A stretch of 64,000 nucleotides of DNA from Setoptus koraiensis (GCA_048013815.1 CM106585.1:17856001-17920000); one strand, 5' to 3'; numbered from the stretch's first letter, positions 1 through 33,988 are shown. Notes: generated from the sequence alone by a model not told the origin. Numbers and translations are program-made.

Positions 1-216
1 ATCACTGATCGTAATGTTCTGAATGTGATACTAACTCGCGCCAAGCACGGTCTCATTATCATCGGCAACGCGGTGGCTTTGTCCAGCAGCCCCCTGCTAA
101 ATTCGTTCGTAAACTATTGTTCTGATGAGGACCTGCTTTACTCAGAATCGCTATCGAAAAATTCTCGGCCCGTCACATTAGATCAACTCATGGAGTGCAC
201 CATTGTAACTCAGTAA
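1..216 (+). CDS. 3' end of a UPF1-like SF1B helicase, cut by the window edge; intact or pseudogene status unknown
   Basis: Frame is open from base 1: ITDRNVLNVILTRAKHGLIIIGNAVALSSSPLLNSFVNYCSDEDLLYSE. This is motif VI plus the C-terminal tail seen in the paralogues at 1633 and 21750. Confidence 0.8.
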   Translation: MTDRNVLNVILTRAKHGLIIIGNAVALSSSPLLNSFVNYCSDEDLLYSESLSKNSRPVTLDQLMECTIVTQ

Positions 217-429
217 TTGTTGCTTCGCCAAAGAAAACACTTCATAAATAAATTGAACATTCATGAGGCCGTGCCTTGCAGCGTCAGTCAGCTAAGTTGC
301 ATTTTGCGTATATTGTTGTTATCTTTTTCTCAGTTCAATCAAGCTCTGTACACTGCCTTATCATCTCTCGTTGTTGTTTTGCTCGCGATCATCAGATTGT
401 AACATGATGCTCTCAATCCAAATGTATAG

Positions 430-1500
430 GTTATAGTCTTTTTGTTCTCCCGGCGAATTTTGAAAGGGGAGGATTACAGCCGAGGAGAATCATCTTGGCC
501 TCAAATCAGGTAACGACTACCCTGGATTCAAGGGTATATATCAAAGTTGTAAGCAATCTAATCATACCTGTCATGTAGAGAACTGTGTATCATAAGATGA
601 AGTTCAATCGAGTAGAAAATCATCATTCTAAGATGATTGGTTGGCTATTGATTGAGGAACGCCAATCGGAAGTGAAAAGGCTCGAATGCAATCTAGTTGC
701 CGGCACATGTCACAAGCGACGTCACTTCGATCCCAATAAATATTTATATTTGAAGAAGTCAAGTAGTAGTCGAAACTGTGAGACTTTTGTGTTGCTTTAT
801 AACTGACCGTGTCCATTTGTTGACAGCAGCACCATGATTATGTTCATAACGGCTCCGATGATAGGTTATCATTAGATGCAGATGGCAGGCACTTATTTAC
901 GGAAGTAATTCTAGAATCACGTATATTTCGAAAACGAGACGGTTCGGAGTTAGTTCGGCGGAGCAAACTCCAAACCGGTAGCTTCACAATCCGCGAAGCC
1001 ATATTTCACGTGTAAAGGAGCCCGTGAGTTAAGTCTCAGTTCTTCACGAAAAAGACTTTATTCGATGAAGTTCGTTCACGTGAGAATAATGAGCGATTGA
1101 CAAATAAATGTTGATAAGTTGTACTTGTGAGTACATGAACTCCGTGATCCGACTCTGGATTCCAGAGTCTGGAATGCCTGAAACTCAAATGGTACTTGTG
1201 TGATCTCTAGTACACATGTAGGCACACTGCAGAGAGGCGAGGTCTTCTCAAGCACTACTTGCGCCTCGTCGGCGTCAAATTTCGGTCACAATCATCATTT
1301 GTTTCATTCGGATACATGTCCCGTGTTGAGCGGCTCAACTTGAGCCAACAATGTTGCAAGCTGGCCTGTAATGATGAAGCCGTTGTTTTCATGGCGTGCT
1401 TGTGACTTGTTGCATTGAACTTTCATATTGCGCGGACTTGGAAAAAAGAAGCACGCCGAGTTATTGTTCAAAACTTGTGATCCACGGGGACAATGAAGTG
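430..1500 (+). pseudogene. Decayed 5'/middle part of a UPF1-like helicase copy
   Basis: Stop-broken peptides match the intact paralogues in order: VS*DEVQSSRKSSF*DDWLAID (cf. SIEEIRLLDNLSFYDDWFEHD), GSFTIREAIF (cf. GLFTISNATF) and TCASS at ~1258 (cf. ICASS). Confidence 0.6.
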
Positions 1501-1632
1501 AAATTCTCATACCCTTGCATCAAGTCAATATTCCCGTAAATTAAAGTTTAATTATTAAACACATACTGGTATTCCGATTGTGTAATTCTGATTGCAAAAA
1601 TTCTCATTGCGGAATCTCAGTACCCTTAGCAA

Positions 1633-4029
1633 ATGGACCCCATGACAAATGCAGCCCTTGTGTCAGTTCGCCTTAACATTCTAGTGAATCAGTCCGACGA
1701 GGCAATCGAGGAATTACAATTCGACGACTGCGAAGCAAACTCGGTCGACCTCGAAACACTGGAGCTTATTCTCAAGGCAGCACCCAATCTCACGTCACTC
1801 AAATTTACAAATCGAAAAGGACAGAATGTAATCAGGAGAATAGGGCCCGATGCTCACTACATCATAACAGACAATTGTTCGAAATTGATAAGCCTCGACG
1901 TGTCTGGGGTGTCAATCGCTCCAACTGAGCTCTCATCGATTAGGACGAAATGTAATCAAATAACAACACTGAAAGTAACTGAAAGTAAACTGGATGACCC
2001 AGGAGAGCTGCAAATTCTCAGACGTACCGGGTATACAGACAGACGCATACACATTACTTCGACACCAGAAAAAGAAGCTGACGCAGTATCGAGAGAGGAA
2101 ACTCAATTGACGGATGAACTGTCATCCGCTCATGGCTATGATTGGCTTACAAGAGACCTTAGTGACTTTGATCAAACAGTGACAGAAATAGAATGGGGTG
2201 ATGTTTCGAATGGATGTTACAAAGATTGCATCGCGTCAATGAGAATAGATGAATCGTTCCTTCAAGATTTAGACAAATACTCCGAGTTGGAATTGTTCCA
2301 ATGCAATCGAGTTGGCGAGGCGATATGGTCAGAAGGTTGTTGGTTCTATCGTTGCGATCATCCAAGTTCTAGCGGCCATCTCTGCGTTGTATTCAAGAAT
2401 GTACCAGACAACTTCACAACATATTACATGCATAACGTATCGAAGCGACCTGAATGTATATTCAAATTAACTAATCTCAAGCTCCACAAAATACATCGAA
2501 AAAAGAGAGATACTCTGAATGCACTGAAACGAATTTCTTTTGACTATCTGTTGCGTTCAATTATTCTTGCACAAGAAGATAAATACAGTACATTAGGAAG
2601 AAGAAACACGTTGAAATCTGCATCGATAGACAAGGCGAAGTTAGACAATGATTTAAGTCCGCTCAATGGTGATCAGATTCTGGCAATCAACAACTCATTG
2701 TGTAATAGAGTCAGTCTAATCATGGGACCTCCTGGTACAGGCAAGACTTACACTTCGGCCTTGCTGGCTCTCAAATTATTCAAGACGAGAATCTCTAGAA
2801 ACTCAAAGATACTTGTTTGTGCATCAAGTGATGCAGCCATCGATAGCATTGCAGATTTGATCCATGAAAACGGGCAGCTCACACTGGTTAAGTTCGGTGA
2901 TGGGATCAATTCGAAACCCTATTGCCTGCATGTGGCTCTACGAAGCATGGCAGATCACGGCGAACAATGTAGCGAAGAACTGTGGGAAGGTCTCAAGAGG
3001 ATCATCCTAAAGGAGAGGCAGGTGATTTGTTGCACTTGTAATAATATTCCTGATTTGATCTCATACGGTCCCTTCATATTTGATTCTGTGATTCTCGATG
3101 ATTGCAATCAGACCGATCTGACTGAAGGCCTGTTAGTTCTGCAAACATTGCCAAGACGTATTGTGCTTGTGGGTGAAGACCGTCTACTGTACAATAAGCT
3201 CCACAGCAAAGTCATAGGTGCAGGTTTCAAGCCGTCCAAGTTATCTATGCAATACCGAATGCATCCAGAGATAGCAAATCTTCGTAGCGAACACCGCAAT
3301 CAATATTCGTCGACGAAAGACGGCGTCTTATCCATGGACAGGCAATGGACCGGCAGAAAAGGCGAATGTCCATTCCCCAGCACCGACAGGCCCATTTATT
3401 TTCACTGCCACAATTCGGAGGAAAGTTCGAGAGATGGAGGGATGTCATGGATCAATGAAGGAGAAGTCGACGATGTTGTGGCCACAATCCAAGTTCTACT
3501 CTCGAGAGGTGTCAAGAGCAGTGAGATTGGGGTAATAACTTTTTTTGAGGATCAAAGGACTATCATCAGAGACCGAACGATGTCAATAGACTCCAAGGGA
3601 GAGATGAGCAAAAGGGACAGCTCAGCCGATCATATTGATTGTGGGATTGATTTGGATCATAAGATGAGTCCAAATGACAAAATTATTGTAGACGATGTCA
3701 TAGATGTGGACACTGTTGACGCTTTTCGAAATCGCGACAAAAACTACATCATCGTTTCATTTGTTAGGTCAAAAGAGTGCGCTGATCTCATAATTGGTCG
3801 GAGTGTTCGGAATTTGATGCTATCTCGAGCCAAGTACGGTCTCATTTTCATTGGCAACGCGGTGGCTTTGTCCAGCTGTCCCATGCTAATTTCGTTTATA
3901 AACTATTGTTCTGATCGGGGCCTGCTTTACTCAGAATTGTTATCGAAAAATTCTCAGCCTGTCACATGGGACCGGGCCAAGAGAGCCATTGTACCTGTGA
4001 GTGCCTCGCAAACGAAAAAACCTTATTAA
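1633..4029 (+). CDS. LRR-like N-terminus + UPF1-like SF1B helicase with degenerate ATPase motifs (798 aa)
   Basis: Walker A GPPGTGKT (2725-2748); motif II DDCNQ instead of DExxQ; motif III GED with no QLxP; QYRMHPEI; TVDAFRNRD; LSRAKYG. N-terminal CSKLISLDVS and CNQITTLKV resemble FBXL-type LRRs. Single uninterrupted ORF. Confidence 0.9.
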   Translation: MDPMTNAALVSVRLNILVNQSDEAIEELQFDDCEANSVDLETLELILKAAPNLTSLKFTNRKGQNVIRRIGPDAHYIITDNCSKLISLDVSGVSIAPTELSSIRTKCNQITTLKVTESKLDDPGELQILRRTGYTDRRIHITSTPEKEADAVSREETQLTDELSSAHGYDWLTRDLSDFDQTVTEIEWGDVSNGCYKDCIASMRIDESFLQDLDKYSELELFQCNRVGEAIWSEGCWFYRCDHPSSSGHLCVVFKNVPDNFTTYYMHNVSKRPECIFKLTNLKLHKIHRKKRDTLNALKRISFDYLLRSIILAQEDKYSTLGRRNTLKSASIDKAKLDNDLSPLNGDQILAINNSLCNRVSLIMGPPGTGKTYTSALLALKLFKTRISRNSKILVCASSDAAIDSIADLIHENGQLTLVKFGDGINSKPYCLHVALRSMADHGEQCSEELWEGLKRIILKERQVICCTCNNIPDLISYGPFIFDSVILDDCNQTDLTEGLLVLQTLPRRIVLVGEDRLLYNKLHSKVIGAGFKPSKLSMQYRMHPEIANLRSEHRNQYSSTKDGVLSMDRQWTGRKGECPFPSTDRPIYFHCHNSEESSRDGGMSWINEGEVDDVVATIQVLLSRGVKSSEIGVITFFEDQRTIIRDRTMSIDSKGEMSKRDSSADHIDCGIDLDHKMSPNDKIIVDDVIDVDTVDAFRNRDKNYIIVSFVRSKECADLIIGRSVRNLMLSRAKYGLIFIGNAVALSSCPMLISFINYCSDRGLLYSELLSKNSQPVTWDRAKRAIVPVSASQTKKPY

Positions 4030-4050: not shown

Positions 4051-4366
4051 ACTGCAGTAAAAATTCCATCCGATAGATTTGTGCCGAATAAGCCATCCTC
4101 TTGACATTATAAATGCGAGAAAAAAACATCCGAAGGCGACGAGGCATCCCAAGGGGTCTTTCCCGTTTAGTGTTTAGAGGGGCCCAACTACGTCCGCCGA
4201 TTGCCCAATTGGCGTTTTCACTGCGATCATTGCTGGCTTGTATGATATGATTTTAGCCCAAGCTATTCGTTTGCAGCAGGTGAAAAGAATCACAAAAGCT
4301 GAACGACAAAACAAAGCGGATGCGACATTGCAACTGTTGGGTGAACTACTGCAATGGACGGATTAG
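4051..4366 (+). pseudogene. Truncated serine-protease-homologue pseudogene directly behind the helicase stop codons
   Basis: In the helicase frame after TAA TAA: KIPSDRFVPNKPSS*...EGDEASQGVFP. After a frameshift/deletion: TTSADCPIGVFTAIIAGLYD...QNKADATLQLLGELLQWTD*. This matches SPH1/SPH7 (PASDRWIPNK, RGDEAAGLFPW, LTAAYCPI...DEALDWTD). Confidence 0.8.
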
Positions 4367-4650
4367 CCAAAACGCTCAATGTATTGTGGAAAAATCTTCG
4401 ATCGTTGGTGAGAGCAAGAGTTGATCAAGCTTTTACTTCAAGTTGATCAGTCAACAGTTTCGATAGAAAAAAATATTACAGTTTTGGCCTGGGAGTGCGA
4501 TTGATGCCAACTGAAAAGTATCATATTACCATTGCAGGCATTTATATCAGAGTCTCAGCTCTGAAAACAGGCCGCAGAGAGTGGATCGATTTGTTGATCA
4601 ATAGACCTTTGGATAGATGCACAGACAGAAAGCTTCAGACATCCGAAAAG
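4367..4650 (+). pseudogene. Decayed helicase C-terminus forming the 5' leader of SPH1
   Basis: SVNSFDRKKYYSFGLGVRLMPTEKYHITIAG...DRCTDRKLQTSEK|M aligns with helicase TVDAFRNRDKNYIIVSFVR...TRAKYGLIFIG...CSDRGLLYSE, in frame with the SPH ATG. Confidence 0.7.
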
Positions 4651-5733
4651 ATGGCTCTCTTGCTTTTGCAGAAACTTCTCTTTGTCGCAACGTGTCTCAC
4701 ATTGGCGATTTTAGTTTTGACACCCGATGAACAGTCTGCAAAAGGTGCTGTAGAACATTTAGAGCGAACGCACAGAACGGAATATGGCGATATTGAGTTT
4801 TATAAAGCGAAAAAACATATCAAGTCACCAGCGGCTCGAGGTGTGGGAGACAGAAAAAAACGCATACCGAAAGCTAAGCGAGATAACGATTTTCAGGTCA
4901 AGTGTGGTATAAATGCTAATCCCGCTAGTGATAGATGGATACCGAATAAGCCTCCGCCCTCTACAGGTAAGAAAAGAATTACCAGAGGCCAGGCGACAAA
5001 TGAAGGCGATTTTCCGTGGTTAGTGTATATAGGAACGCTATCTGCCGATGGAATGCCTATTAAATTGGAATGTGGTGGCACAATCATATATGAGCGAATT
5101 GTGTTGACGGCCGCCTACTGCCCAATTTCCGAAAACACTGTAGTCATTGCCGGCATGTGGGATTTAAAGGCGAGCATTCCTAATTCTAGACAACAACACA
5201 GAAAAGTAGCACGATTCGATCGACACAAGAGCCTAGATGTAGCATTGCTACTGTTGGATGAAGCGCTGGACTGGACAGATTATGTTAGACCTGCTTGCTT
5301 GCCACCATGGCCGGGGTCAGACCACACTCTAGAGGAAGGCACAGAGGTCACTATAGCCGGCTGGGGACTTACGGAACCGGGAAAAGATGGCAAAGGACGC
5401 TTTCCAGCTACAGCAAGAGCTGCTATTGTGAAAATCCAACCCGAACAATCATGCCTCCGTTTTCCAGAGCTCAAGAAATTCTACGATCACGCATCTCATT
5501 TTTGTTCACATCCACAGGAATTCCATGATGAAAAATATCCTGCAGGAGTGTGCGATGGTGATAAAGGTGGACCAGCGTTTTATGTCAGAAATGGTGTCTG
5601 GGAGGTTCATGGCGTAATATTCGGCGGAACGTGCCATGGCCTAACCGGTTATTCAAGAGTGACTTTATTACTGGATTGGATCGATACATTTAAAACTCTT
5701 CATGCCGGTACGAAGCCAGAACATAATGATTAA
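4651..5733 (+). CDS. Secreted trypsin-fold serine protease homologue SPH1 (predicted inactive)
   Basis: Signal peptide MALLLLQKLLFVATCLTLAILVL; activation site KKR|ITRG; His57->Y (TAAYC); Asp102 kept (DVALL); Ser195->K (GDKGGP). An upstream in-frame ATG exists at 4504. Confidence 0.9.
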   Translation: MALLLLQKLLFVATCLTLAILVLTPDEQSAKGAVEHLERTHRTEYGDIEFYKAKKHIKSPAARGVGDRKKRIPKAKRDNDFQVKCGINANPASDRWIPNKPPPSTGKKRITRGQATNEGDFPWLVYIGTLSADGMPIKLECGGTIIYERIVLTAAYCPISENTVVIAGMWDLKASIPNSRQQHRKVARFDRHKSLDVALLLLDEALDWTDYVRPACLPPWPGSDHTLEEGTEVTIAGWGLTEPGKDGKGRFPATARAAIVKIQPEQSCLRFPELKKFYDHASHFCSHPQEFHDEKYPAGVCDGDKGGPAFYVRNGVWEVHGVIFGGTCHGLTGYSRVTLLLDWIDTFKTLHAGTKPEHND

Positions 5734-6123: not shown

Positions 6124-6780
6124 CGAAGATAGCACATCGCAGCGATACGAGTCATACGATGAGCAGTCCTCAACCAAACTGTGACCGATGACCATTATAT
6201 ATCTGGCAGATCTTCGATGCGGAGATCGTCAGTCTACTGAGTAGAATCTACTCTGTTAGTTATCGCAAATAGCAGCGGCGACTGGGCTAGCAATGAGGTA
6301 TTTCCAAGAATGTTACAACTCAGAGGACTGGCAGCCATTTTATAATGACAGTTTCGTATTCATCAGTTTTTCTCTCAGTTTTAACATGAAATGCACCTCG
6401 ATGGTGGCTAATTATATCTATCTATTAATATATCAATCTAATTATAACTATCTAATTGATGCGTCAGTCTGGTTCATCAAGTAGCGATGTTCTAGCCAAG
6501 GAGCTCAATGTATTGTAGGAAAATCTTCGATCGCTGATGTGAGCAAGGGTTGAGTAGGTTTTTACTTGCATTAGATCAGGCAACGGTGTTGGTAAAAAGA
6601 CGTATTGCGGCTTTCAGCCAGAGAGTGCGATAATTGCCAACTGAAAAGTATCTTATTACCATTGCAGGCATTTGGAACAGAGTCTCAGCTCAGAAAACAG
6701 GCCGCAGAGAGTGGATCGATCTGTTGATCAATAGACCTTTGGATAGATTCACAGACAGAAAGCTTAAGACATCCGAAAAG

Positions 6781-7878
6781 ATGGCTCTCTTGCTTTTGCA
6801 GAAAATTCTCGTTGTCGCAACATGTGTCACATTGGCGATTTTAGTTTTGACACCCGATGAACAGTTTGCAACAAGTGCTGTAGAACATTTAGAGCGAACG
6901 CACAGAACGGAATATGGCGACATTGAATTGTACAAAGCGAAAAAACATATCAAGTCATCAGAGGCTCGAGGTATGCAAGATAAAAAATCGCGCAAACCGA
7001 TTGATGCAAAAATTAACAAGTTTGATATCATGTGCGGCGTACCTGAGAATCCCGTTAGTGAAAGATTTATACCGAATAAGGACAAACCAACCTATAAAGG
7101 CAAGCAAAGAATTTCCGGAGACGTAGGAGTGGCACCTCAAGAGGATTTTCCGTGGTTAGTGTTTCTAGGATCGCAAGCTCCAGATCGACCTGGACTTCAA
7201 GTATTATGTGGTGGCACAATCATACATGAGCAAGTTATCTTGACATCTAGCCGAACTTGTCCAATCAGCAAAAACACCGTGGTCGTTGCCGGTGAACATG
7301 ATATATCCGATCCATATCCTAACGAACGGAAACAATACAGAAAGATAAAAAAAGTACAACGACACAAAATCGAAGATGTGGCATTGCTACTGTTAGATAG
7401 ACCACTGAATTGGACAAATTATGTTAGACCTGCTTGCTTGCCACCATGGACAGGAAAAGAAGATCTTGGGCACCTATTGAGCGAAACGGAAGTCACTATA
7501 GCTGGTTGGGGAGCTTCGTATTTTGAAGATGGAAAAGGAAAGTATCCGAGTTTAACGAGAGCTGCCGTTGTGCCAATAAAGGATGAAGCATTTTGCCAGA
7601 GCGAGGTCAACAAAATGAATAACGGAAAATACAATCATTATTCTAATTTTTGTACATACCTTTGGATCCGCTGGGACCCTAATCAGTCAGCCTGCCCTTA
7701 TGATTCAGGTGGACCGGCGTTATATGTCAGAAATCGTCGCTGGGAAGTGTATGGCGTAATATCCTGGGGAAAATGCGAAGGCGTAACCGTTTATACTAGG
7801 GTGACCATATTAATAGACTGGATTGAGAAGTTTAAAGTTACTCATCATGTTGCGAATGCCGGAAACAGACAGCGGTAG
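6781..7878 (+). CDS. Secreted serine protease homologue SPH2 (predicted inactive)
   Basis: Same leader as SPH1; KQR|ISGD; His motif replaced by TSSRTC; Asp kept; Ser195 kept but G193->Y (YDSGGP). Confidence 0.9.
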   Translation: MALLLLQKILVVATCVTLAILVLTPDEQFATSAVEHLERTHRTEYGDIELYKAKKHIKSSEARGMQDKKSRKPIDAKINKFDIMCGVPENPVSERFIPNKDKPTYKGKQRISGDVGVAPQEDFPWLVFLGSQAPDRPGLQVLCGGTIIHEQVILTSSRTCPISKNTVVVAGEHDISDPYPNERKQYRKIKKVQRHKIEDVALLLLDRPLNWTNYVRPACLPPWTGKEDLGHLLSETEVTIAGWGASYFEDGKGKYPSLTRAAVVPIKDEAFCQSEVNKMNNGKYNHYSNFCTYLWIRWDPNQSACPYDSGGPALYVRNRRWEVYGVISWGKCEGVTVYTRVTILIDWIEKFKVTHHVANAGNRQR

Positions 7879-7919: not shown

Positions 7920-8590
7920 AATCATTAGTTCTTGTTGGCTATATCTGGCAGATTTTTGACGCGGATGTCGTCAGTCGTCTACTTTGTGAATTATCGCGTA
8001 AAGCGGGCTCGACAGGGTTGGCCATGAGGCATCTCCAAGAATGTTATAACTCAGAGCGATCAATTCGTGCATATATTGTGCTTCTTTCTCTCTACTCACT
8101 TGTGCGCACAGCTTCTCAATCCTTCGTGCTAAATAAATCTTGCTGCAAATAAATTCTTAATGAATTAACAAACTATTCGAGGTTGAGTTTATCTCGGCGA
8201 ACAAAAGTTACAAATCCGTTTTCATTTGGTGAATCTTAAGTAGACTGGGCTGGACAATGCGACGTTCCGGTAATCTGACCGGATGGGTGGTGCTTGTATC
8301 GGGCAGTATTCTATGTGAGTGATTCCGTTCTTCATGGAAATTGATGCATGCTCACAAAAACTATGGAGTTGAACTGGACACTAGACGTCTAGCACTACTT
8401 TATTGTGTCACTAGTTAGATCACGGGGGTATTCATGTTTTTTATCACTGTCCGTAATATATCCAATGTGATGCGTGATCAAGCTCGACACCGCAACAACA
8501 TAATGGCCAGCGCACTTGCTGCTAGGAACAATCGTTCGGCGAATTCGTAGCTCGAATATTGCTCTAGTGGTGGCTTGCGGCACTAACAAC
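7920..8590 (+). pseudogene. Heavily decayed UPF1-like helicase copy
   Basis: IVSLVRSRG at ~8402 and NVMRDQARH...ASALAARNN...YCSSGGL match IVSLVRS...NVTLTRAKYG...GNALALLNN...DCSSRAL. Confidence 0.6.
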
Positions 8591-8607
8591 TTGTCAGTGA
8601 GTGACGA

Positions 8608-12250: not shown

Positions 12251-12257
12251 GGACAAA

Positions 12258-13115: not shown

Positions 13116-13777
13116 TTTTTGTACAAGGATCTACCCAATGTTGCATTTACAATATTCTCTTCACAAGCAGCAGCATCATGAATGAGCATGCCAGTTTCAA
13201 GTTATGTCGCGACTCGTGACAACAATATTCAAAGCACGAAAATGGACAGCAGAGGAGCAATTACAATGTTAGAATTGGCTGCCATTAGTCAATATTGAGA
13301 TTGATCACACGCAACTTTTCTTTTCTTTCTTCGCTCTGCTTTTTTTTCCGGAACTCGGAATTTCCGATCTATCGTCGAGAGAAGCAGACAAATAAGATTT
13401 ATAGTTTTATTTCGAGCGTTAAAATTCATCTACAACGTTGTGATCTTCAATAGAGAAGATCGAGTGGCCATGTAAGCTCGATGTTGTGCATACAAACAGA
13501 TCCGGAGCTCTAAGTGCCGTACAAAATCTTCGGGCTGATCGTTGTTCAGAGAACGATCAAGAAGTTGATCAGGCAGTAGTTTCGGTAGAAAAAAAAAGTA
13601 TTGCGACTTTCAGTCTGAGAGTGCGATAGTTGCCAACTGAAGAGTATCTTATTACCAATGCAGGCAATTAGAGCAGCATCTTAGCCCCGAAAACAAGCAA
13701 GTAGAGACTGGATTGGTTTGTTGATTTGCAGACTTTTGGATAGATCCGTAGACAGAGGACTTTCGACATCCGAAAAG

Positions 13778-24316: not shown

Positions 24317-25719
24317 GTGTGCGTTGATTCAAATATAATCATCTTGTTGTTCTTTCGGCTAACTTCGGACCCATATTATAGCCGAGTTGAGAATCATCTT
24401 GACTTCAGACTAGATGATGACTACTGTGGCTTCAGGGCGAAATATCATCGTTATGTCGAATCCACTCGTCTCTGTCTTGTTGAAAACCAAATATCAGAGG
24501 GGGAAGTTCAGTTGAGTTCTAAATTATCATTCCAAAATGGTTGCCTGACCCTTGATTGAGGAACGCCAATGGGAAGAGAAAGAGCTAGAATGCAATCGTG
24601 CTGCCGCCACATGTCATAATCGAATGTATGCCAACTATTGGGCTGAAATCAACAAATATGAACTCGGCTACTAATAATTAGTGACTAATTTACTCATGAT
24701 AATTAAAAAATTTCGCCCAGTTGGAGTCGTTTGAAAAAGATTGGCATGTCGAAACTATGTGGTGATGTGTATCGCCAGACCATGTTGCAGTCAATGTTGT
24801 GGGCTAAAGCTCCTTCAAAAGGAAGCAGCCAACAAAATTCTCAATGCAATCGAACAAGTATGATTATGGGACAATCAGGCACAGGTAAAACCTTCACATC
24901 GGCTACATTGGCATAACAAATATTTCGAACACGACAATCAAAAAACGCAAACATGCTCATTTGTCCAACAGGTAAATAAAGCTGTAGATAATGTTGCTGA
25001 CAAGATCAGAGGGCAGGGGCAATTGAGTGTGGTCAGAAAAAGTTCTGAGTGCGACATACGCATTCGAAAACTCCTCTTGATGGATATGGTCGGGATCGAT
25101 GAAAACGCTTAGACAGGACATATTAACTATTGAGTTTGGCAAGTTAAACCGTTCAGTGCGGATGCTCGATTAGTTACAAGGAAATAGAAGGAGGCTCAGA
25201 TGGAGTTTCGAAGAGCGCTTGCAAAAAAGAAATCAACGAAATAATTCAAATGTCATTTGTTGCCCATGTGGTGGCATTTCTAGATTGATTAGCAACGGAG
25301 CATATTTACTGGACTCTAGAGTACGTCATCGTGGTGCATTTATGAATGAAAGACTCCAATAGTAGAGTGATAGCTCGTCTACGACGTTGTGATCTTGAAT
25401 AGAATAGATCAAGTAGACGTTTTACACTGTTGACGCGCATGCAAACCAACCTGAAGCCCAACGTACCGTAATAAATCTTTGGGCTGATCGTTGTTGAGAG
25501 CAAGAGTTGATTGGGTTTTTACTAACAGTTGATCACGCAACGTTTTTCAGTAGAAAAAAAAAATATTGCCGCTTTCAGCCTGAGAGTGCGATAGTTGCCA
25601 ATTGAAAAATATCTTATTACCATCAGCCCTGAAAACAAGCAAGTAGAGAGTGGATTGGTTTGTTGTTGAGCAGACTTTTGGATAGATCCGTAGACAGAAG
25701 ACTTTCGACATCCGAAAAG
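24317..25719 (+). pseudogene. Decayed helicase copy leading into SPH7
   Basis: SEGEVQLSSKLSFQNG; MIMGQSGTGKTFTSATLA at ~24860; then the same C-terminal relic and leader as the other SPHs. Confidence 0.75.
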
Positions 25720-26802
25720 ATGGCTTTCTCGCTTTTGCAGAAACTTCTATTTGGCGCAACGTGTCTCTCATTGGCAGTATTAGTTTTGACACCTGATGAA
25801 CAAATTGCAACAAGTGCCGCAGAACATTTCGGACGAACGCACAGGACGGAATATGGCGATATTGAGTTTGACAAGGCGAAAAAACATATCAAATCACCAG
25901 TGGCTCGAGGGGTGCGAGGCAAAAAAAAGGGCGCGTCACATTGGCTTTCTGATGACGGTGATGCTGTCACTTGTGGTGTAAATCCGAATGCCGTTCCTGA
26001 TTTATTTGTTCCGAGTAATCCCCACACCAATATAGGCAACGAAAGAATTATGCGAGGCGACGAGGCAGCAGGGCTATTTCCTTGGCTAGTGTTTATTGGA
26101 AGTCGAATCTTTGATGGATCCTTTCGAATAAAGTGTGGTGGCACAATCATATTTAAGCAAATTGTTCTGACGGCCGCCAATTGTCTAACGAGCGATGGCA
26201 TTGTAGTCGTTGCCAACATGTTTGATATAACTAAACCATTGCAACCTTACGAACAGTTGAGAAGAATCAAAAAAGCTGTACGACACGACAAAGCGGGTGT
26301 AGCATTGCTCCTGTTGGAGGCACCATTACACTGGACGGATAATGTCAGACCCGCTTGCCTGCCGCCACGGTCAGGGGAGGGAAGCCATTTTGATCCATTC
26401 GACCTAGGAACGCAAGTCACTGTAGCAGGCTGGGGAGCTGTCGATCGCAACGCGGACGACGGACCATCCTACCCAATTACACTGAGGGCCACTGTTGTGT
26501 CAATCATGGATGAACAATTTTGCCTTGATAATCTCAACAATGGCACTATAAAATTGTATGATCATTCAGTAAATTTTTGTTCACATCAATCGTCCAAGCA
26601 TCCGGTGAATGCACCGGTTTTTGCCTGCGAGGGTGATTTAGGAGGACCGGCGTTATTTGTCAGGAACGGTCGGTGGGAAATTAAGGGCATAATCACTGCG
26701 GCGCGGTGCAAAGGCCCAATCGTTTATGCGAGGGTGAATATTTTATTGGACTGGATACAAGATTTTGTCGTATCCCTGGATCGACAGACAGTCTCTCAGT
26801 AG
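25720..26802 (+). CDS. Secreted serine protease homologue SPH7 (all three catalytic residues lost)
   Basis: Same leader; NER|IMRG; His->N (TAANC); Asp->G (AGVALL); Ser195->L (GDLGGP). Confidence 0.9.
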   Translation: MAFSLLQKLLFGATCLSLAVLVLTPDEQIATSAAEHFGRTHRTEYGDIEFDKAKKHIKSPVARGVRGKKKGASHWLSDDGDAVTCGVNPNAVPDLFVPSNPHTNIGNERIMRGDEAAGLFPWLVFIGSRIFDGSFRIKCGGTIIFKQIVLTAANCLTSDGIVVVANMFDITKPLQPYEQLRRIKKAVRHDKAGVALLLLEAPLHWTDNVRPACLPPRSGEGSHFDPFDLGTQVTVAGWGAVDRNADDGPSYPITLRATVVSIMDEQFCLDNLNNGTIKLYDHSVNFCSHQSSKHPVNAPVFACEGDLGGPALFVRNGRWEIKGIITAARCKGPIVYARVNILLDWIQDFVVSLDRQTVSQ

Positions 26803-26839: not shown

Positions 26840-27700
26840 AATCATCGTCGATCGATTCTCTATAGAAAAACAGTTGGAATCGTTGCCCGATGCCACCCTG
26901 TGATGCAACTTCAACTCTTATATCGAGCCCGATCGTTGATGCCATAGATGAGACCACATGTATAACTAAAATTAGCAAGCTATATACTCTAAATCAAAGT
27001 TATACAACTGTTGCGGGAATTCTAAACATTTCACACACCATTTTGTTGTGAAGGGGCTGTCCCACCAAACTACTTCCCGGATCAAGAGATTAAGCTCTTG
27101 CATCTAGTTTTATTGGCGATAGAAAATGATCAAATAAGACGCTGACCTCACGAAGATTGGAAACGCATTTGCCCTACTTAACTGTCCGTTGGAGAATTTG
27201 TTCTGTTCAAAGACTGTTCCACAAGAGGAACAGTTATTCACACACAACTGTTGTCAGAGAATGTCATACGAAATGTTTCGGTTAGCTCTAGCTTAACTAC
27301 TGTCGACGAAATGAATCATTCGGATTGCATCCACCTCAGCTCTTTGGGTACGGTATCCCGATAGAGATGCTTCTGTCGATGTGCCCACAATTGATACTCA
27401 CTACAGGGTCGTGAGAGAAACTATGTTGTTTTTCATCTGTTGGTTCAAGAGATTGTCCTGCTTGTAACTGTTTCGATTGGAGTATGTTGATTGGAGCGCT
27501 CAATCGAGCTAAATACGGTCTCAATAGAGATCGACGCTCGTAATTTCCCTGCGTTATAACATATTCGGAAAGGCATTGGCTTTATCGAGCGATCTATTTG
27601 TTGAACATGCTGATCGTAAACTGTTCCAATAGAGGCCTGTTGTACTAGAAATTGTAGTCATAAGAATCTTGATTAGTAACTTTAGATGAGTTATTGCTAG
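26840..27700 (+). pseudogene. Two consecutive decayed helicase C-terminal fragments
   Basis: ILYRKTVGIVARCHPVMQLQLLYR and IGNAFALLNCP (~27150); then QGRERNYVVF, LNRAKYGL and GKALALSS (~27360-27600). Confidence 0.7.
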
Positions 27701-28105
27701 AGGCTAATGTATTTTATCTTTTCAATCTGTGAGTCACTGATAAATAAATTCCAGTGATCATATTCATAAACGCGTCCCACTAAACTATCCGATTCTAGTT
27801 GTATTACATAACATACATTCAACAATAACCACGGATCAAATGATGACATTCACGCTTGCTCATTCTGAAGCGATTGACGAGCAAATTATCTCTCATCGAT
27901 TACATGATGTTTACAAAAGTGCGACTCCATTGTTGTCGTTTATCCTTCTGCAGGCCGCTCTTTTTAAACGTGACAGTAATACGAATCGACTCACGCTTAG
28001 ATGACTTGAGTCTTTCGGATTAAGTTTTTTGAGTGGGATAACTACGCATCCGTTCTGACTATAGCGGCAGCCACTTAGTGACGACGATTGTCTATTCCTT
28101 AGCTC

Positions 28106-30835
28106 ATGTTTTGTTTCAGTTCCATCAGACAGAATTTACACTTATTGTCATTGCATAGGCTATATTTCAACTCTTATCGAAATATCATTAGTATAATGGT
28201 GTTCGAAAAAAGGACTTGTTGGCTAGACCTGCTGCCCACAGAACTTCTGCTAATGATTTTGCGACACCTCGAAGACTATAGCGATCGTTATCATTTATCC
28301 TTGTTGTCAGACCGTCTCAATAGCGTAGTATATCAGTCTTATACAGTAGAACTATACTGTAGAACAGTGGAGAATTTGTCATTCGAAGGCTTCAAAGCAA
28401 ACTCTATGGACCTAGAAACACTGGAGCCGATCCTGAAAAGTGCCTCAAGACTCAGGTCTCTTAAACTAACCAATAGAGATGGACGCAATGTTATCAGAAG
28501 AATTGGACCAGATGGTCATTTTATTATTGCAGACAATTGTTCACAATTAACAAGTTTGGACGTGTCTGAGGTATCGATAGCTCCGTCCGAGCTCGCTTCA
28601 ATAATGAAAAAGTGTGACAAATTAAGAGTGTTAAAAATGATTAATACTCGACTGGATGATCAGCAAGAGATAATTGAGCGTCGGCCGTCAATACAAATTC
28701 AAAGATATGATTCTCTCCATGTTATTGATCAGAGACGTTGGCGTGACTTTTCCCGTTCTCATGTTGGACGATATACAATTTCTAGCTCTGAAAACTACCC
28801 AAAATCGATAGAGGAGATTCGTTTGCTGGATAATCTCTCATTTTATGACGATTGGTTCGAACACGATCGCATGGAATTGTATCAAAATTTTACGGAAATC
28901 AAATGGTCCAGATCCTTTGAAGGAAGTTACGAATGTTACACAGCGATGATAAAATTAGATCAGATCGATCAATCGTTCCTTCAAAATATCAATAGATACA
29001 CTGAGTTCGAATTGTCTGAACAGGATAAATTTTGTGCAAAAGTATGGTCAGCACGGGGGTGGCTTAATCATAACTTTTATTCCGGCCCTTGTAATAATAT
29101 AGATCGCAGGTATCATCGATTCCTGCACGTCGTCTTCAAAAATAGAGGTGGTATAAACGAAACTTGGAGTTACGTTAGATCCATGCCAACTGAGGGTTTA
29201 TTCACTATATCCAATGCCACTTTCCGAAACTTACATCAAATGAAGCATGACATATGGAGAAATGGACTCAAGCGAATTGCGGATGACTATCTACTTCGTT
29301 CGATTATTCTGGCTACTGAAAATGAATTCTCGACTTTCGAACACAGAAACATCCTCAAATCTGTTTCAGTCGACGATGCATTGTTGGAGGAAGAAGATCA
29401 GCTCAATGAGAGTCAGACAGATGCAATCAAATACTCCTTGTGCCATAGGGTCAGTTTGATCATGGGCCCGCCGGGAACAGGCAAGACATTTACTTCAGCA
29501 TCTGTGGCCTTGAAAATGTTTGAAACGAGGGCCAGTGAAAATTCAAAGATACTGATTTGTGCATCGAGTAATATCGCAGTCGACATTATAGCAGACAAGA
29601 TCTATGAGCTGAACCAACTTACAAGAATGGTTGAAATGGTTAGAATCAGTTCTGAGTACAACACGAAAAAACAGGACGGATATCTCAAGCCATACTATTT
29701 GGATAGTCTTTTATCTGGACAAATCCAATTCACCGATGACAACTATGACTACGGTGATGAAAATCATAGTTGGCGTGATGAGAAGCAAACGAAGAGGGAA
29801 CGCGTAAAAGAAATAATCGATGGATCAGATATGATTTTTTGCACTTGCAATAGTATCCCGAAGTTGATGAGCTATGGGTCCTATTTATTTGATTCCGTTA
29901 TTGTTGACGAATGCAGTCAAATCAGTGTCCCAGACGGTCTGTTACTACTGCAGTTTCTGCCAAGAAGAATTGTGCTTGTGGGCGACGACAACCAGTTAGG
30001 GCCTGTGATAAAGGACGCCCTGAAGAAGAAATACAACCCCTCAAATGCTGTTCTATACAACAAACTCAAAGATGTCGGTTTCACGCCAGTCATGTTGAAT
30101 ATTCAGTACCGAATGCATCCAGAAATAGCGCAATTTCCTAACAAGCATTTCTACGGAGGAAAGATAAAGAATGGCATTCAAGCAAGCGATAGGCGATGGA
30201 CAGGCACACAAAATAAGTGTCCATTCCCCAATCCTGATAAGCCAATTTATTTTCATTGTCACTACTCAGAGGAGTGCCAACGACATGGCTCTACATCATT
30301 GAGCAATGAGGGGGAAGCCGATATTGTTCTGGCCACACTTGAAGTTCTGCTCTCTAGAGGGACACAAAGGAGTGAGATTGGAGTGATAACGCCTTACAAA
30401 GATCAGAGTAGTCTAATTGCAAAAAAGATGAATTCTAGAGATTACAAGGAAAAGTTAACTATAAAAAAGTCTCCTGACGACATCATAGAGGTGGACACTG
30501 TTGACGCCTACCAAGGTCGTGACAAAAACTACATCATTGTCTCACTGGTCAGATCAAGAAACTGTTCTGGTTTCATTGCCGATAGGAAACGACTAAATGT
30601 GACGCTAACTCGAGCCAAATACGGTCTCATAATCATTGGAAACGCATTGGCCCTATTGAACAATCCATTAATGAATGCGCTGATTATGGACTGCTCCAGT
30701 AGGGCACTGCTGTATTCGGAAATTTTATCGGAAAAGTCTCGGCCTGTCACTCTAGATGTGCTGTTGTTGAGAGACCACGATATCTCACTTGCTGTGAGCT
30801 CGCTGCTCAGAGATCTTATGAATAAGTTGACTTAG
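28106..30835 (+). CDS. F-box + LRR + UPF1-like SF1B helicase with intact motifs (909 aa; alternative ATG at 28196)
   Basis: F-box LDLLPTELLLMILRHLEDYSDRYHLSLLSDRLNSVV; LRR-like CSQLTSLDVS and CDKLRVLKM; GPPGTGKT, DECSQ, GDDNQLGP, QYRMHPEI, ITPYKDQ, TVDAYQGRD, RLNVTLTRAKYG. Confidence 0.92.
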   Translation: MFCFSSIRQNLHLLSLHRLYFNSYRNIISIMVFEKRTCWLDLLPTELLLMILRHLEDYSDRYHLSLLSDRLNSVVYQSYTVELYCRTVENLSFEGFKANSMDLETLEPILKSASRLRSLKLTNRDGRNVIRRIGPDGHFIIADNCSQLTSLDVSEVSIAPSELASIMKKCDKLRVLKMINTRLDDQQEIIERRPSIQIQRYDSLHVIDQRRWRDFSRSHVGRYTISSSENYPKSIEEIRLLDNLSFYDDWFEHDRMELYQNFTEIKWSRSFEGSYECYTAMIKLDQIDQSFLQNINRYTEFELSEQDKFCAKVWSARGWLNHNFYSGPCNNIDRRYHRFLHVVFKNRGGINETWSYVRSMPTEGLFTISNATFRNLHQMKHDIWRNGLKRIADDYLLRSIILATENEFSTFEHRNILKSVSVDDALLEEEDQLNESQTDAIKYSLCHRVSLIMGPPGTGKTFTSASVALKMFETRASENSKILICASSNIAVDIIADKIYELNQLTRMVEMVRISSEYNTKKQDGYLKPYYLDSLLSGQIQFTDDNYDYGDENHSWRDEKQTKRERVKEIIDGSDMIFCTCNSIPKLMSYGSYLFDSVIVDECSQISVPDGLLLLQFLPRRIVLVGDDNQLGPVIKDALKKKYNPSNAVLYNKLKDVGFTPVMLNIQYRMHPEIAQFPNKHFYGGKIKNGIQASDRRWTGTQNKCPFPNPDKPIYFHCHYSEECQRHGSTSLSNEGEADIVLATLEVLLSRGTQRSEIGVITPYKDQSSLIAKKMNSRDYKEKLTIKKSPDDIIEVDTVDAYQGRDKNYIIVSLVRSRNCSGFIADRKRLNVTLTRAKYGLIIIGNALALLNNPLMNALIMDCSSRALLYSEILSEKSRPVTLDVLLLRDHDISLAVSSLLRDLMNKLT

Positions 30836-31462
30836 AAACAAATGGTACGCTTGTCAGAAGGTCCGAAAAACAGTCTTGCTTGCAACGGCAGATTCTTGTG
30901 TTTTTTCCTGTTTCATTTTCTGGTCGACACTTGCATCTCCAATAACTATTCAGTTGATTCGCTGTCACATTTTTGTTGCTCTCGTTTTTGTTCGACTCTT
31001 TGTTTTGACAACTTTCATCAATACTTGTATTACCATTGTATTTTTCGTGCAGATTATTTCGACTTTCTGTGCAATTCTTACCGAGGACAACCGAAGACAA
31101 GGCGACACAATGTCTGCACAGTGAGCGCCGTCAGATGAAAAACTATTTGCGACCACCCTTTAGATCAATGTGCGAAAGATGATCATTGATACTCGTTGAT
31201 AATGACATCGTAAGCACACATCGCAACCTTACATGATTGTGTGTCACCAAGCGACTCCCGCAAAGACGATCTTGATCTACTGTAGCTAACTACAACGGAG
31301 TACTAACTATTTATTTGACCTTGTCACGATGATATTGATCGATTCAAGCTAATTTTGAAATATTTTCGCGTTTGGAGCTCGTTCCATAATTGCATCACCT
31401 TTGCACAAAAGCAGAGATTGGTTAGAGTTACTAGTGAAAACGACATCATCAAGCTCATCAGC

Positions 31463-33988
31463 ATGTTGGAGGTGCCAGTAATTGTTGGCATCGCGCTGTT
31501 GCTTTGGGCTGTGTATTACTTGTGTCGTCGCGACACTGAATCACTCGAAAAAGAGGACCCTGTATCAAATCGATCCAGCACACATGAGTACGATGACAGC
31601 AAACAGGCTAACATTGAGGTGAGCGACGATTTATTATTCGAACATTGTGAGGCGAACTCGCTCGATCTTGAAACACTTGAACCGATACTCAGACAGAGGC
31701 CAAACCTCGGGACACTTAAACTAACAAATAAATATGGTCACAATGTGATCGGAAGAATCGGACCCGATGCCCATTTTATCATAACAGACCACTGTCCAAA
31801 CTTGACCAGTCTCGACGTATCTGGAGTCTCTGTCGCTCCGTCCGAGCTCATTTCGATATTGAAAAAATGTGAAAAAATAAAAAAATTAATAATTGTTGCC
31901 ACTCAGTTTGATGATCCGGAGGAGTTGTCGCTCATCAAACGCCGGCCGTTCATACAAATCCAGCGGAATGCCGATGCTAAAACATATAGGATGCTCAAAT
32001 ATATCGTGGATAACACAAAGTCTATAGAAGAAAATCAATTGTTTGCTGAATTGTCCTTCTATGATAATTGGCTAGCAGAGGAACTTAGTAGTTCGGATCA
32101 GAAGATCTCGGAAATCCAATGGACTAAGACCTCAAGAGGGGACACTGGTGGCCACATTGCAGAATTAAAATTGAACGAAATCAATAGATCGTTCTTCAGC
32201 GATATGGACAACGATAGCGAGCTAGAATTGTCTGAATACGATAAATTGGGCGAGACAATTTGGTCAGCACGAGCTTTGCTCCATAAATCCAATCGCCAGT
32301 CTAGCGGATGCATTCATGTTATAGTCAAAAATGTCCTTAAACGAGATAAAAATTGGTATTTTGTTGAGGGAATGCCTATTGGAGGCTCTTTTAAGTTGAC
32401 CAATGCCAAACTTCGATTTTGGCAGCAAAAAAAGCATAACACAATACGAAATGGACTCAAACGCATTTCTTGGGACTATCTGCTTCGTTCGGTCATTCTG
32501 GCCAAAGGAAATGAATTTTCCACGCTTAAACGATGGAACACCCTGAGATCTGTATCAGTAGGCAAAATTAAATTAGATGACGATTCTGGTCTCAATGAGA
32601 GTCAAATGAATGCAATTAAAAATGCATTGTGCAATAGGATAAGCTTGATTATGGGACCGCCAGGCACAGGCAAGACATTTACCTCAGCATCGTTGGCTTT
32701 CCAACTATTCAAAACGAGATCCTCTAGTAACTCTAAGATACTTGTTTGCGCATCAAGTAACGCAGCGGTCGATATTATAGCGGACAGAATCGAGGAATTG
32801 GGTAAACTCAAAGTTGCGAGAATTAGTTCTTACTATAACATAAAAAAACAGAAAGGAAATTGCAGGTCATTTTATTTGAATAGTCTTTTAGACGAACGAC
32901 TCACCTCAGATGATTTGTCTGGACCCTTCAGGAAATATCGTGATCTGCTATCGCGACAATCTGTTGCCGGGCGCAAAGTAAACAATTCTAAGAAAGAGTG
33001 CGAGAAAAAAATACTCGAAGAGATCCAAGTCATTTGTTGCACTTGTGCTAGCGTTCCTAGATTGATAGGCCATGGCATAAATTTATTTGATTCCATAATA
33101 GTTGACGAGTGCAGCCAGATGACTGTCCCTGACGGTCTGTTACTATTGCAGTTTCTGCCAAGAAGAATTGTGTTTGTGGGCGACGACAATCAATTGGGGC
33201 CTGTGATAAAAGATAACCTGAGAAAGAAATACAATTTCTCCAATACTGTTCTATATAACAAACTCAAAGGTGTTGGTTTCAAGCCAGTCATGTTGAACGT
33301 TCAATACCGAATGCATCCGCAAATAGCGAAATTTCCCAGCCAGCATTTCTACCGAGGAAAAATAAAAAATGGTATAGAGCCTAACGACAGACAATGGACG
33401 GGCGAAAGAAAAAAATGTCCATTTCCCTTCCATAACAAGCCCATTTATTTCCACTGTCACACTTTCCAAGAAGACCATCTACCTTCTTCAACGTCCTGTT
33501 TCAATCTAGGAGAAATCGACATTGTCGTGAAAACCATTGAAGTTTTGCTGTCGAGAGGTTTGCAGGAGAATGACATTGGAGTAATAACTCCGTATAAAGA
33601 TCAAAGCAATTATATTACCGATCGATTATATTCAAGCGATTCATCTGGTGAGATGAAGAAAACGAAGTCTTTGGATGACATAATAGAAATCGACACTGTT
33701 GACGCTTACCAAGGCAGAGACAAGGATTACATCATCGTGTCATTGGTCAGATCAGTCATTGGAGACTATCATAGTTTTATTGCCGATCCAAAAAGACTCA
33801 ATGTGACTCTTACACGAGCTAAATACGGCCTAATTATCATTGGTAATGCATTAAATTTATTGAACAATCCCTTCATGAGTGCGTTGATTGCTGACTGTTC
33901 CAGCAGAGACCTTTTATACTCAGAAATTCTATCAGAAAAATCTCGACCGGTTACTTTAGACGAGCTCAAGTCTGGCCTGAAATGTTGA
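31463..33988 (+). CDS. N-terminal membrane anchor + LRR + UPF1-like SF1B helicase with intact motifs
   Basis: First ATG at 31463 (the track start at 31355 is TTG): MLEVPVIVGIALLLWAVYYLCRRD, then the LRR-like segment and all SF1 motifs (GPPGTGKT, DECSQ, GDDNQLGP, QYRMHPQI, TVDAYQGRD, RLNVTLTRAK). Confidence 0.9.
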   Translation: MLEVPVIVGIALLLWAVYYLCRRDTESLEKEDPVSNRSSTHEYDDSKQANIEVSDDLLFEHCEANSLDLETLEPILRQRPNLGTLKLTNKYGHNVIGRIGPDAHFIITDHCPNLTSLDVSGVSVAPSELISILKKCEKIKKLIIVATQFDDPEELSLIKRRPFIQIQRNADAKTYRMLKYIVDNTKSIEENQLFAELSFYDNWLAEELSSSDQKISEIQWTKTSRGDTGGHIAELKLNEINRSFFSDMDNDSELELSEYDKLGETIWSARALLHKSNRQSSGCIHVIVKNVLKRDKNWYFVEGMPIGGSFKLTNAKLRFWQQKKHNTIRNGLKRISWDYLLRSVILAKGNEFSTLKRWNTLRSVSVGKIKLDDDSGLNESQMNAIKNALCNRISLIMGPPGTGKTFTSASLAFQLFKTRSSSNSKILVCASSNAAVDIIADRIEELGKLKVARISSYYNIKKQKGNCRSFYLNSLLDERLTSDDLSGPFRKYRDLLSRQSVAGRKVNNSKKECEKKILEEIQVICCTCASVPRLIGHGINLFDSIIVDECSQMTVPDGLLLLQFLPRRIVFVGDDNQLGPVIKDNLRKKYNFSNTVLYNKLKGVGFKPVMLNVQYRMHPQIAKFPSQHFYRGKIKNGIEPNDRQWTGERKKCPFPFHNKPIYFHCHTFQEDHLPSSTSCFNLGEIDIVVKTIEVLLSRGLQENDIGVITPYKDQSNYITDRLYSSDSSGEMKKTKSLDDIIEIDTVDAYQGRDKDYIIVSLVRSVIGDYHSFIADPKRLNVTLTRAKYGLIIIGNALNLLNNPFMSALIADCSSRDLLYSEILSEKSRPVTLDELKSGLKC

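Follow-up and report, generated by a model that had tools for sequence, protein, structure and literature searches.

A tandem cluster of UPF1-like helicases lacking the CH domain, with varied N-terminal heads, in the mite Setoptus koraiensis

Introduction

UPF1 is the core helicase of nonsense-mediated mRNA decay (NMD) and is normally encoded by a single, highly constrained gene. Its UPF2-binding CH domain is RING-related and has a reported E3 activity. Two other Upf1-like helicases of superfamily 1B (SF1B), MOV10 and ZNFX1, restrict viruses. FBH1, in which an F-box precedes the helicase, was called the only known F-box helicase in a 2025 review (PMC13200063). Here we analyze a 64,000-nucleotide stretch of the genome of the mite Setoptus koraiensis (GCA_048013815.1, CM106585.1:17856001-17920000), referred to below as the window, which holds four intact members of a tandem cluster of UPF1-like helicase genes. 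A first inspection of this DNA (the sequence-only reading) had described an array of intronless UPF1 derivatives devoid of the CH domain. A full-text literature search returned no account of arrays of CH-less UPF1 paralogues or of a fusion between an F-box and a UPF1-like helicase.

We consider it fairly probable that the cluster consists of helicases with a UPF1-type motor and no CH domain, that their N-terminal heads are modular, and that the cluster grew by duplication of cassettes that also carry catalytically dead trypsin-fold genes.

Results

Six intact helicase genes in a 39-kb cluster

The genome screened comprises 48.8 Mb in two contigs, whose coordinates are given as C1 and C2; window positions 1-64,000 correspond to C1:17856001-17920000. 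The cluster spans about 39 kb (C1:17850552-17889988), with its 5' edge about 5.4 kb before the window start. It contains six intact helicase genes, namely U1 and U2, which start upstream of the window, and A, B, C, and D within it; all six have frames that are uninterrupted over 784-909 codons. In the window, the helicase genes, their relics and the interleaved trypsin-fold genes all lie on the + strand. The four long open reading frames (ORFs) of the sequence-only reading were re-found on that strand at all four positions, and the array is indeed clustered; the claimed span of 34 kb is too short, since two intact family genes precede the window. The helicase genes are as follows (LRR, leucine-rich repeat; aa, amino acids).

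C1:17850552-17852957: helicase U1, 801 aa, upstream of the window
C1:17853769-17856216, + strand, 3' end at window 1-195: helicase U2, 815 aa; LRR-only head, motifs II and V degenerate (tblastn, ORF, motif table)
1633-4029, + strand: helicase A, 798 aa; LRR head, stalk/1B, UPF1-like core (Pfam, motif table)
21750-24104, + strand: helicase B, 784 aa; recent duplicate of A with identical motif losses, 85% aa identity
28106-30835, + strand: helicase C, ORF of 909 aa; F-box at aa 41-77, LRR at ~90-180, stalk and 1B barrel at ~236-392, complete UPF1-like core
31355-33988, + strand: helicase D, 877 aa, or 841 aa if translation begins at the first ATG (31463); hydrophobic anchor then RR, LRR, stalk/1B, complete core

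Comparison with its paralogues indicates that the start codon of C is likely the ATG at 28196.

A tblastn search of the window with all four helicase proteins recovered, beyond the four ORFs, three clear relics, one trace and the tail of U2 at 1-195.

8393-9776, + strand: helicase relic 1; C-terminal half, ~residues 426-787 of A, with one frameshift near 9450-9465 (tblastn frames 1 and 3, Pfam on 8608-9477)
15461-16145, + strand: helicase relic 2; frameshifted and internally deleted, left as three short pieces, 84% DNA identity to relic 1
24833-25323, + strand: helicase relic 3; a fragment of ~44 aa at the Walker A motif and a second, weak one (tblastn)
27103-27699, + strand: weak helicase trace (tblastn E 3e-4)

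The helicase genes of the sequence-only reading are thus real, and its copy number is overstated: instead of at least ten decayed copies there are three relics and one trace, and seven other ORFs belong to the trypsin family. That is, an unrelated, interleaved gene family had been taken for decayed helicases.

A UPF1-type helicase region without CH domain or SQ-rich tail

All four helicases of the window match AAA_11 and AAA_12 above the Pfam cut-offs. The closest solved structure is that of UPF1 (2xzo), which C matches with an E-value of 9.5e-69 and A with one of 4.6e-41. Far behind are Sen1 and IGHMBP2 (2.5e-42 and 1e-25 in the comparison with C), DNA2, Aquarius, and ZNFX1. A genome search for a separate, canonical UPF1 identified one gene, 4 Mb away at C1:21934120 (~21.93 Mb), whose single 999-codon frame encodes the CH (PF09416, E 1.4e-69), 1B (PF18141), AAA_11, and AAA_12 domains. 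C is 37% identical to this protein across 440 aa spanning every helicase motif, and the motifs quoted in the sequence-only reading (QYRMHP..FP..FY.G..NG, PDKPIYF, and TRAKYGLIIIGN) are present and align to it.

The canonical UPF1 is also the single genome-wide match to PF09416, with none in the family ORFs scanned, and phmmer with the mite CH domain recovered no family member. No SQ/TQ cluster occurs in the family tails; the proteins stop ~40-70 residues past motif VI, with a short conserved tail. The proposed lack of both the CH domain and an SQ-rich tail is therefore borne out by the Pfam model, by phmmer and by the tail sequences, and a clustered family of this kind, nearest to UPF1 and standing beside a canonical UPF1, is supported. 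Because it has neither element, the family is very probably not coupled to the NMD that UPF2 and SMG1 drive.

As regards other NMD factors in this mite, UPF3 is present, with one in-frame TGA in its domain match at C2:14199867-14200298, and the Pfam model of the UPF2 C-terminus (PF04050) has no match genome-wide, although such a null is no proof that UPF2 is missing. How the NMD co-factors fare in an intron-poor mite is perhaps worth attention.

The AlphaFold2 model of C, based on 13 family sequences, has a mean predicted local distance difference test score (pLDDT) of 65.8, with most of the core at 70-90. Residues 236-890 of this model superpose on residues 295-914 of human UPF1 (Z 28.9, 585 of 613 residues), the stalk helices and the 1B barrel included. 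Consistent with this result, hhalign aligns the profile of the family's pre-core region to that of the UPF1 1B region (probability 79%, E 1.6e-5). The Pfam 1B model (PF18141) has no match in the four window ORFs or in three further members (E <= 0.001-0.01), and BLASTP detects no similarity between the family's pre-core and the 1B region of UPF1. The 1B-barrel-like segment proposed earlier is thus supported by the alignments of fold and of profiles. Such a barrel is common to Upf1-like helicases (the C model scores Z 27.1 against IGHMBP2 and 24.8 against SETX), and hence is not diagnostic for UPF1; UvrD structures match the C model in the RecA core only (Z 18.6-19). According to these models, the family retains the whole UPF1 helicase region, i.e., the stalk, the 1B barrel, RecA1 with its insert, and RecA2.

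The intact cluster genes are single open frames, as the word 'intronless' in the sequence-only reading implied. This is no clue to their origin, because the canonical UPF1 is also one frame and intronless genes are the norm in eriophyoids; their share is 83.7% in the eriophyoid Aculops lycopersici (PMC7738191). The tiny genome and the single-frame genes of the present mite are in keeping with that group. The same genome paper makes no mention of UPF1, helicase or F-box.

Range and descent of the family

An exhaustive HMMER search against 1.84 billion representatives returned two close relatives, P0121 and P0122, at 44% identity, both from contigs of one Logan run. Of the best 150 matches, 95 carry a CH domain by phmmer, i.e., they are canonical UPF1s, at 33-39% identity. 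A word-indexed protein search with C gave distant UPF1-like and other SF1B proteins (<=34% identity) and no family member. Within the representatives searched, all family members from outside this mite genome come so far from a single public run.

Maximum-likelihood trees of the helicase cores were computed under LG+C20+F+G4. The most careful of them has 32 rows; dropped from it were every second or third UPF1 hit, B, U2, L003_b, L004_b, P0121, the hits labeled 'noCH', and some outgroups. Locus L006, whose assembled sequence includes a stretch of N and poly-T, was excluded from all trees. The helicase family is monophyletic with support 100/100. P0121 groups with the anchored U1, and P0122 with the headless copies on contig 2; these pairings imply that the subfamilies predate the split from the second organism.

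In the best careful tree the family forms a clade with UPF1, yet descent from UPF1 proper, as supposed in the sequence-only reading, is overstated. The support for this clade is just 71% by ultrafast bootstrap and 90.7% by the Shimodaira-Hasegawa-like approximate likelihood-ratio test (SH-aLRT), and a grouping with MOV10, which costs 9.4 log-likelihood units, is not rejected by the approximately unbiased test (p-AU 0.224). The family could instead come from another Upf1-like SF1B lineage, either a MOV10-like one or an old independent paralogue, its likeness to UPF1 reflecting slowly evolving core motifs. Consistent with such an origin, the family is never adjacent to the mite's own UPF1 in the trees, and the 1B barrel is general, with the Z-scores against IGHMBP2 and SETX close behind that against UPF1. 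The combination of a long stem (0.8) and a position apart from the mite UPF1 makes a fast UPF1 offshoot and an older Upf1-like paralogue indistinguishable here. On the other hand, UPF1 is far ahead in all sequence comparisons (E 1e-68, against the values for Sen1 and IGHMBP2 given above), the CH-bearing UPF1s make up most of the best 150 matches, the best tree joins the family to UPF1, and the pre-core region aligns specifically with the UPF1 1B profile. An origin outside UPF1 is, in our judgment, unlikely.

Alternative N-terminal heads

In every cluster member but U1, a conserved module of ~90 residues precedes the stalk. Its consensus, ANS.DLETLEPILK...LKLTN...ITDNC..LTSLDVSGVSIAP.EL..I..KC, is that of a cysteine-type LRR, and in the models it alternates strand and helix (pLDDT ~80-88). 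The LRR heads, like the F-box and anchor described below and the motif loss in A and B, were missed in the sequence-only reading.

Upstream of the LRR module, C matches the F-box model PF12937 at aa 41-77, with 24.7 bits against a cut-off of 24.3. Sub-threshold matches occur at the corresponding position in paralogues from loci L003, L005, and L006, and no F-box is present in A, B, or D. The modeled head of C is closest to the F-box/LRR proteins D3, SKP2, TIR1, COI1, FBXL2, and FBXL17, with weak E-values of 8.5e-4 to 0.03, and its look-alikes in the Protein Atlas are F-box/LRR clusters (score 0.77), which we take as a lead only. When residues 31-200 of C were co-folded with the mite Skp1, the interface score ipSAE was 0.73, compared with 0.32 for the best control; in calibration, the ipSAE mark was attained by 51 of 78 solved complexes and by 2 of 108 mismatched pairs. 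The runs agreed on at least 60% of contacts, with a partner pLDDT of at least 68, and the predicted interface places residues 36-71 of C (the F-box) against the C-terminal helices of Skp1 (97-145) in canonical geometry. The modeling thus supports docking of C on the mite Skp1.

Two further F-box/LRR-helicase genes, L005 (C1:1235001-1240500) and L006 (C1:1305501-1311000), are interrupted: one interruption is a poly-T/N stretch, and the other is an in-frame TGA between codons ~620 and 640.

The N-terminus of D consists of ~19 hydrophobic residues and then RR, and U1 and P0121 begin in a similar way. D and U1 would be membrane-anchored, with the helicase in the cytosol by the positive-inside rule. 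A, B, and U2 have neither F-box nor anchor before the LRR module.

Catalytic motifs

The helicase motifs GPPGTGKT, DECSQ, GDDNQLGPV, QYRMHP, TVDAYQGRDK, and LTRAKYG are complete in C, in D, and in the copies at 7.85 Mb and on contig 2; in C and D the whole set (Q, I, Ia, II, III, IV, V, and VI) is intact. In A, B, and U2, motif II reads DD for DE and motif V reads RN for QG; A and B have in addition lost motif III together with ~30 residues after it. Motifs I, III, IV, V, and VI are degenerate in U1, in which DE is retained; P0121, from the other run, is likewise degenerate and has lost the Walker lysine. A is therefore predicted to be ATPase-deficient, and B carries the same degenerate motifs. 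By descent both are Upf1-like SF1B members, in which enzymatic activity is improbable. Two of the six intact genes in the cluster, C and D, are predicted to encode active helicases.

Selection and expression

The ratio of nonsynonymous to synonymous divergence (dN/dS) was calculated by the Nei-Gojobori method, with Fisher tests against neutrality on C-D, A-B, A-U2, and the cross-species pairs.

C and D: dN/dS 0.23, dS 1.46
C and L003b (no Fisher test): dN/dS 0.15, dS 1.82
A and U2: dN/dS 0.40, dS 0.54
A and B: dN/dS 0.51, 0.66 in the core, dS 0.16, Fisher p 1e-5
U1 and P0121, cross-species: dN/dS 0.28, dS 1.04
L004a and P0122, cross-species: dN/dS 0.24, dS 1.51
L004b and P0122, cross-species: dN/dS 0.28, dS 1.22

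The Fisher p-values in the tested pairs range from 1e-5 to 1e-56. The long ORFs are thus not near dN/dS 1, the value expected of neutral drift; in the cluster they lie at 0.23-0.51 with p <= 1e-5. Since the ratios are significantly below 1, the degenerate copies are maintained, with relaxed constraint. The highest sliding-window values fall in linkers and in the region of the decayed motifs of A and B.

These data bear on whether the long ORFs are recently dead or drifting duplicates, i.e., a graveyard of pseudogenes. The relics in the cluster fit that explanation, as do the motif loss in A and B and the raised ratio between them. However, all six frames are uninterrupted, dN/dS is significantly below 1 in the tested pairs, and the cross-species pairs stay open at dS ~1-1.5 with dN/dS 0.24-0.28. 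We find this explanation very unlikely, and rejected it on the open frames and on the dN/dS ratios below 1.

They bear as well on the interpretation of the locus as ~14 fast-turnover UPF1 derivatives that act in NMD-independent RNA surveillance against viruses or retroelements. Such a function would agree with the loss of the CH domain and the SQ tail, with the clustering of young and old duplicates and relics, with the variation among heads, with the narrow range of the family (this genome and one other run only), and with the virus restriction by its relatives MOV10 and ZNFX1. Against it, the cluster has only six intact genes and three or four relics, the remaining ORFs being pseudo-proteases; the selection is purifying over the full length, with no clear positively selected window; no RNA run matches the locus; and the catalytic motifs are degenerate in four of the six intact genes. 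We regard an antiviral array of this kind as unlikely.

Interleaved trypsin-fold genes

The seven ORFs that intervene between the helicases on the + strand (340-414 codons) belong to the trypsin family (PF00089, E 1e-19 to 1e-28); a short relic was found by tblastn with these ORFs.

4069-4363, + strand: trypsin-like short relic, directly 3' of helicase A
4495-5733, + strand, likely ATG 4651: pseudo-protease T1, PF00089 E 1.2e-24; His57 site TAAYC, Ser195 site GDKGGP
6634-7878, + strand, likely ATG 6781: trypsin-fold homologue T2, without His57, serine retained (YDSGGP)
10619-11722, + strand, likely ATG 10679: pseudo-protease T3 (Pfam, sequence)
13718-14809, + strand, likely ATG 13778: pseudo-protease T4, 95.7% DNA identity to the T3 unit
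17468-18490, + strand, likely ATG 17528: pseudo-protease T5 (Pfam, sequence)
19767-20846, + strand, likely ATG 19827: pseudo-protease T6 (Pfam, sequence)
25660-26802, + strand, likely ATG 25720: pseudo-protease T7 (Pfam, sequence)

Examination of the catalytic triad (His57, Asp102, Ser195) shows that the histidine of TAAHC is replaced in all seven, and the serine of GDSGGP in six of the seven. All seven proteins have signal peptides. In a genome-wide comparison, the genes form a subfamily of their own that is confined to the helicase cluster. Their leaders (MAFSLLQKLLFGATCLTLAILVL...) and flanks share 80-98% DNA identity, compared with just 68-78% for the mature domains. The products may be secreted, perhaps salivary, pseudo-proteases that diversify in their mature part.

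Cassette duplication and support for the assembly

Self-comparison of the cluster reveals segmental duplications that differ in age. The DNA identity of A and B is 86.8% across 2.7 kb, including ~370 bp upstream; the protease units share blocks that are 95-98% identical (e.g., 10330-12253 and 13417-15341); and U2, relic 1, and B have homologous 3' flanks. By dS, A and B are young duplicates (0.16), and C and D are old (~1.5). The birth and death of genes proposed in the sequence-only reading is accordingly real, with young and old duplicates and a few relics. From the pattern of segmental duplication, we read the repeat unit as a cassette, multiplied by unequal exchange, in which a single helicase gene is accompanied by one or two protease-like genes. 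Because the protease subfamily is found in this cluster only, and the other genomic loci of the helicase family have no trypsin-like neighbor, the pairing is taken as co-duplication and not as a functional, operon-like link.

The synonymous divergence between A and B is uneven, with a proportion of synonymous differences (pS) of ~0.4 in the first 100 codons and 0.02-0.10 in codons 150-450, which points to a tract of gene conversion between these two copies, separated by 20 kb.

Contigs from three public runs tile 28001-33990 at ~100% identity and even depth. The three runs amount to two independent data sets (X2 and X3 are identical data), and the contigs look genomic. Reproduction of this stretch at even depth in two independent studies implies that C and D are not an assembly artifact. 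In the C-D spacer, at 31001-31200, run X1 shows a threefold rise in depth (306, compared with ~100), and several contigs terminate there in unrelated loose ends; this feature looks like a short dispersed repeat.

We also considered that a transposable element or an endogenous virus might carry the helicases as cargo, or that the array might be an artifact of assembly. Copies are numerous genome-wide, the fold is common to nidovirus and alphavirus-like helicases, and the array contains segments that are 95-98% identical. Yet the copies lie in tandem clusters and are not dispersed, the duplicated blocks carry host-type neighbor genes and flanks and not element ends, and the closest relatives are cellular UPF1s with the same layout of stalk, 1B, and core; the C-D stretch, moreover, has even depth in two independent studies. 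This explanation is extremely unlikely. An origin from a transposable element or a virus was rejected on the tandem clusters, the host-type blocks and the cellular UPF1 relatives.

Surroundings of the cluster

Further upstream of U1 and U2 lie a gene for a DHHC palmitoyltransferase and a secreted ORF that has no annotation. Downstream of the cluster, in the ~14 kb at 40000-54000, G+C rises from ~42% to 51-57% and short tandem repeats are numerous (CAA/TTG runs, units of 11-39 bp); no ORF above 200 codons and no Rfam match is found there. Three ordinary-looking single-frame genes lie farther along the window.

54710-55615, + strand: dual-specificity phosphatase
55753-59514, - strand: RING and PHD protein with a SCAF11-like C-terminus, 1253 aa
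61162-63312, + strand: PRMT-type arginine methyltransferase

Discussion

The reading we favor, namely a tandem cluster of CH-less UPF1-motor helicases with modular heads, can be set out as follows. Repeated unequal duplication of a helicase gene with one or two pseudo-protease genes would have built the cluster, and a short cysteine-type LRR module would have replaced the UPF2-binding CH domain. [quoted passage not shown] The N-terminal anchor of D and U1 would fix the helicase at a membrane, on the cytosolic side. A, B, and U2, with an LRR head alone, as well as U1, are most likely nucleic-acid-binding or scaffolding pseudo-helicases, as the purifying selection on these degenerate copies suggests. 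The analysis establishes how the genes are built, their domain layout, the state of each motif, the selection, the clustering, and the docking on Skp1 as a prediction; we infer RNA as the ligand, the SCF activity, the membrane topology, and any surveillance or antiviral role.

Several observations weigh against this reading. The tree support for a common clade with UPF1 is limited, and MOV10 is an acceptable alternative partner. Every Pfam match to an LRR is below the cut-off; the Pfam score of the F-box in C is marginal, and that part of the model has low pLDDT. The pass of the Skp1 co-fold may reflect memory, in the model, of solved Skp1-F-box complexes. The evidence for the anchor consists of the hydrophobic stretch and the basic residues that follow it. 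The sliding-window analysis of dN/dS shows no convincing stretch above 1, i.e., the signature of an arms race is absent. The public runs that match the locus include no RNA run, and contigs cannot show transcription. Lastly, the contig check covered 28001-33990, and the 8-21 kb part with its 95-98% identical segments lies outside it.

A broader proposal is that the UPF1-derived motor has become a modular, NMD-independent family of RNA sensors, whose outputs would be an SCF ligase, a membrane platform, and an ATPase-dead clamp or decoy, and whose cluster would expand and decay in the manner of immune genes. We hold this to be a long shot. If it were true, F-box helicases would exist in a second kind, independent of the first, and the family would be a novel form of RNA-directed ubiquitin ligase in animals. 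By analogy with the CH domain, one idea is that an F-box in its place would preserve the link between helicase and ubiquitination by other means.

In the locus described here, an animal lineage retains a canonical UPF1 alongside a clustered family with the full motor, in which the CH domain is exchanged for LRR, F-box or anchor heads. What the window adds is the context of the cluster, alternative heads side by side, and pairs of live and degenerate copies. Should C function as part of an SCF ligase, it would be the first helicase beyond the UvrD-type FBH1 to carry an F-box, and would link the recognition of RNA directly to ubiquitination. The degenerate, conserved paralogues are a natural set of 'locked' UPF1-like proteins for studying motors without turnover.

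Among known proteins, the nearest is UPF1 (RENT1/NAM7), which the family resembles in the helicase region and in the predicted fold with stalk and 1B; C and D keep the SF1B motifs. Unlike UPF1, the mite proteins lack the CH domain and the SQ tail, carry new heads, are encoded by clustered multi-copy genes of which several are catalytically degenerate, and do not fall robustly in the UPF1 clade. MOV10, MOV10L1/Armitage, ZNFX1, and SDE3 likewise combine an Upf1-like SF1B core and a 1B-type barrel with lineage-specific N-terminal modules; their similarity to the mite family is much lower, and the mite's MOV10-like gene (L010) has the MOV10 beta-barrel and helical domains that the family lacks.

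FBH1 (FBXO18) shares with C an F-box before a superfamily 1 helicase, the docking of C on Skp1 being a prediction. FBH1, however, is a UvrD-type SF1A 3'-5' DNA helicase with no LRR, whereas the mite motor is Upf1-like SF1B, an LRR module lies between it and the F-box, and the F-box is present in some paralogues only. The order of an F-box followed by cysteine-type LRRs is that of the FBXL receptors (SKP2, FBXL2, FBXL17, TIR1, D3), to which the matches are weak (E 8.5e-4 to 0.03); C has ~3-4 repeats, and its main body is a helicase and not a long LRR solenoid. Finally, the interleaved genes resemble the clip-less serine protease homologues of arthropods, which have a dead S1 fold, in their trypsin fold, signal peptide, and lost catalytic residues. 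They differ from these in forming a cluster-confined subfamily with near-identical leaders and diverged mature parts.

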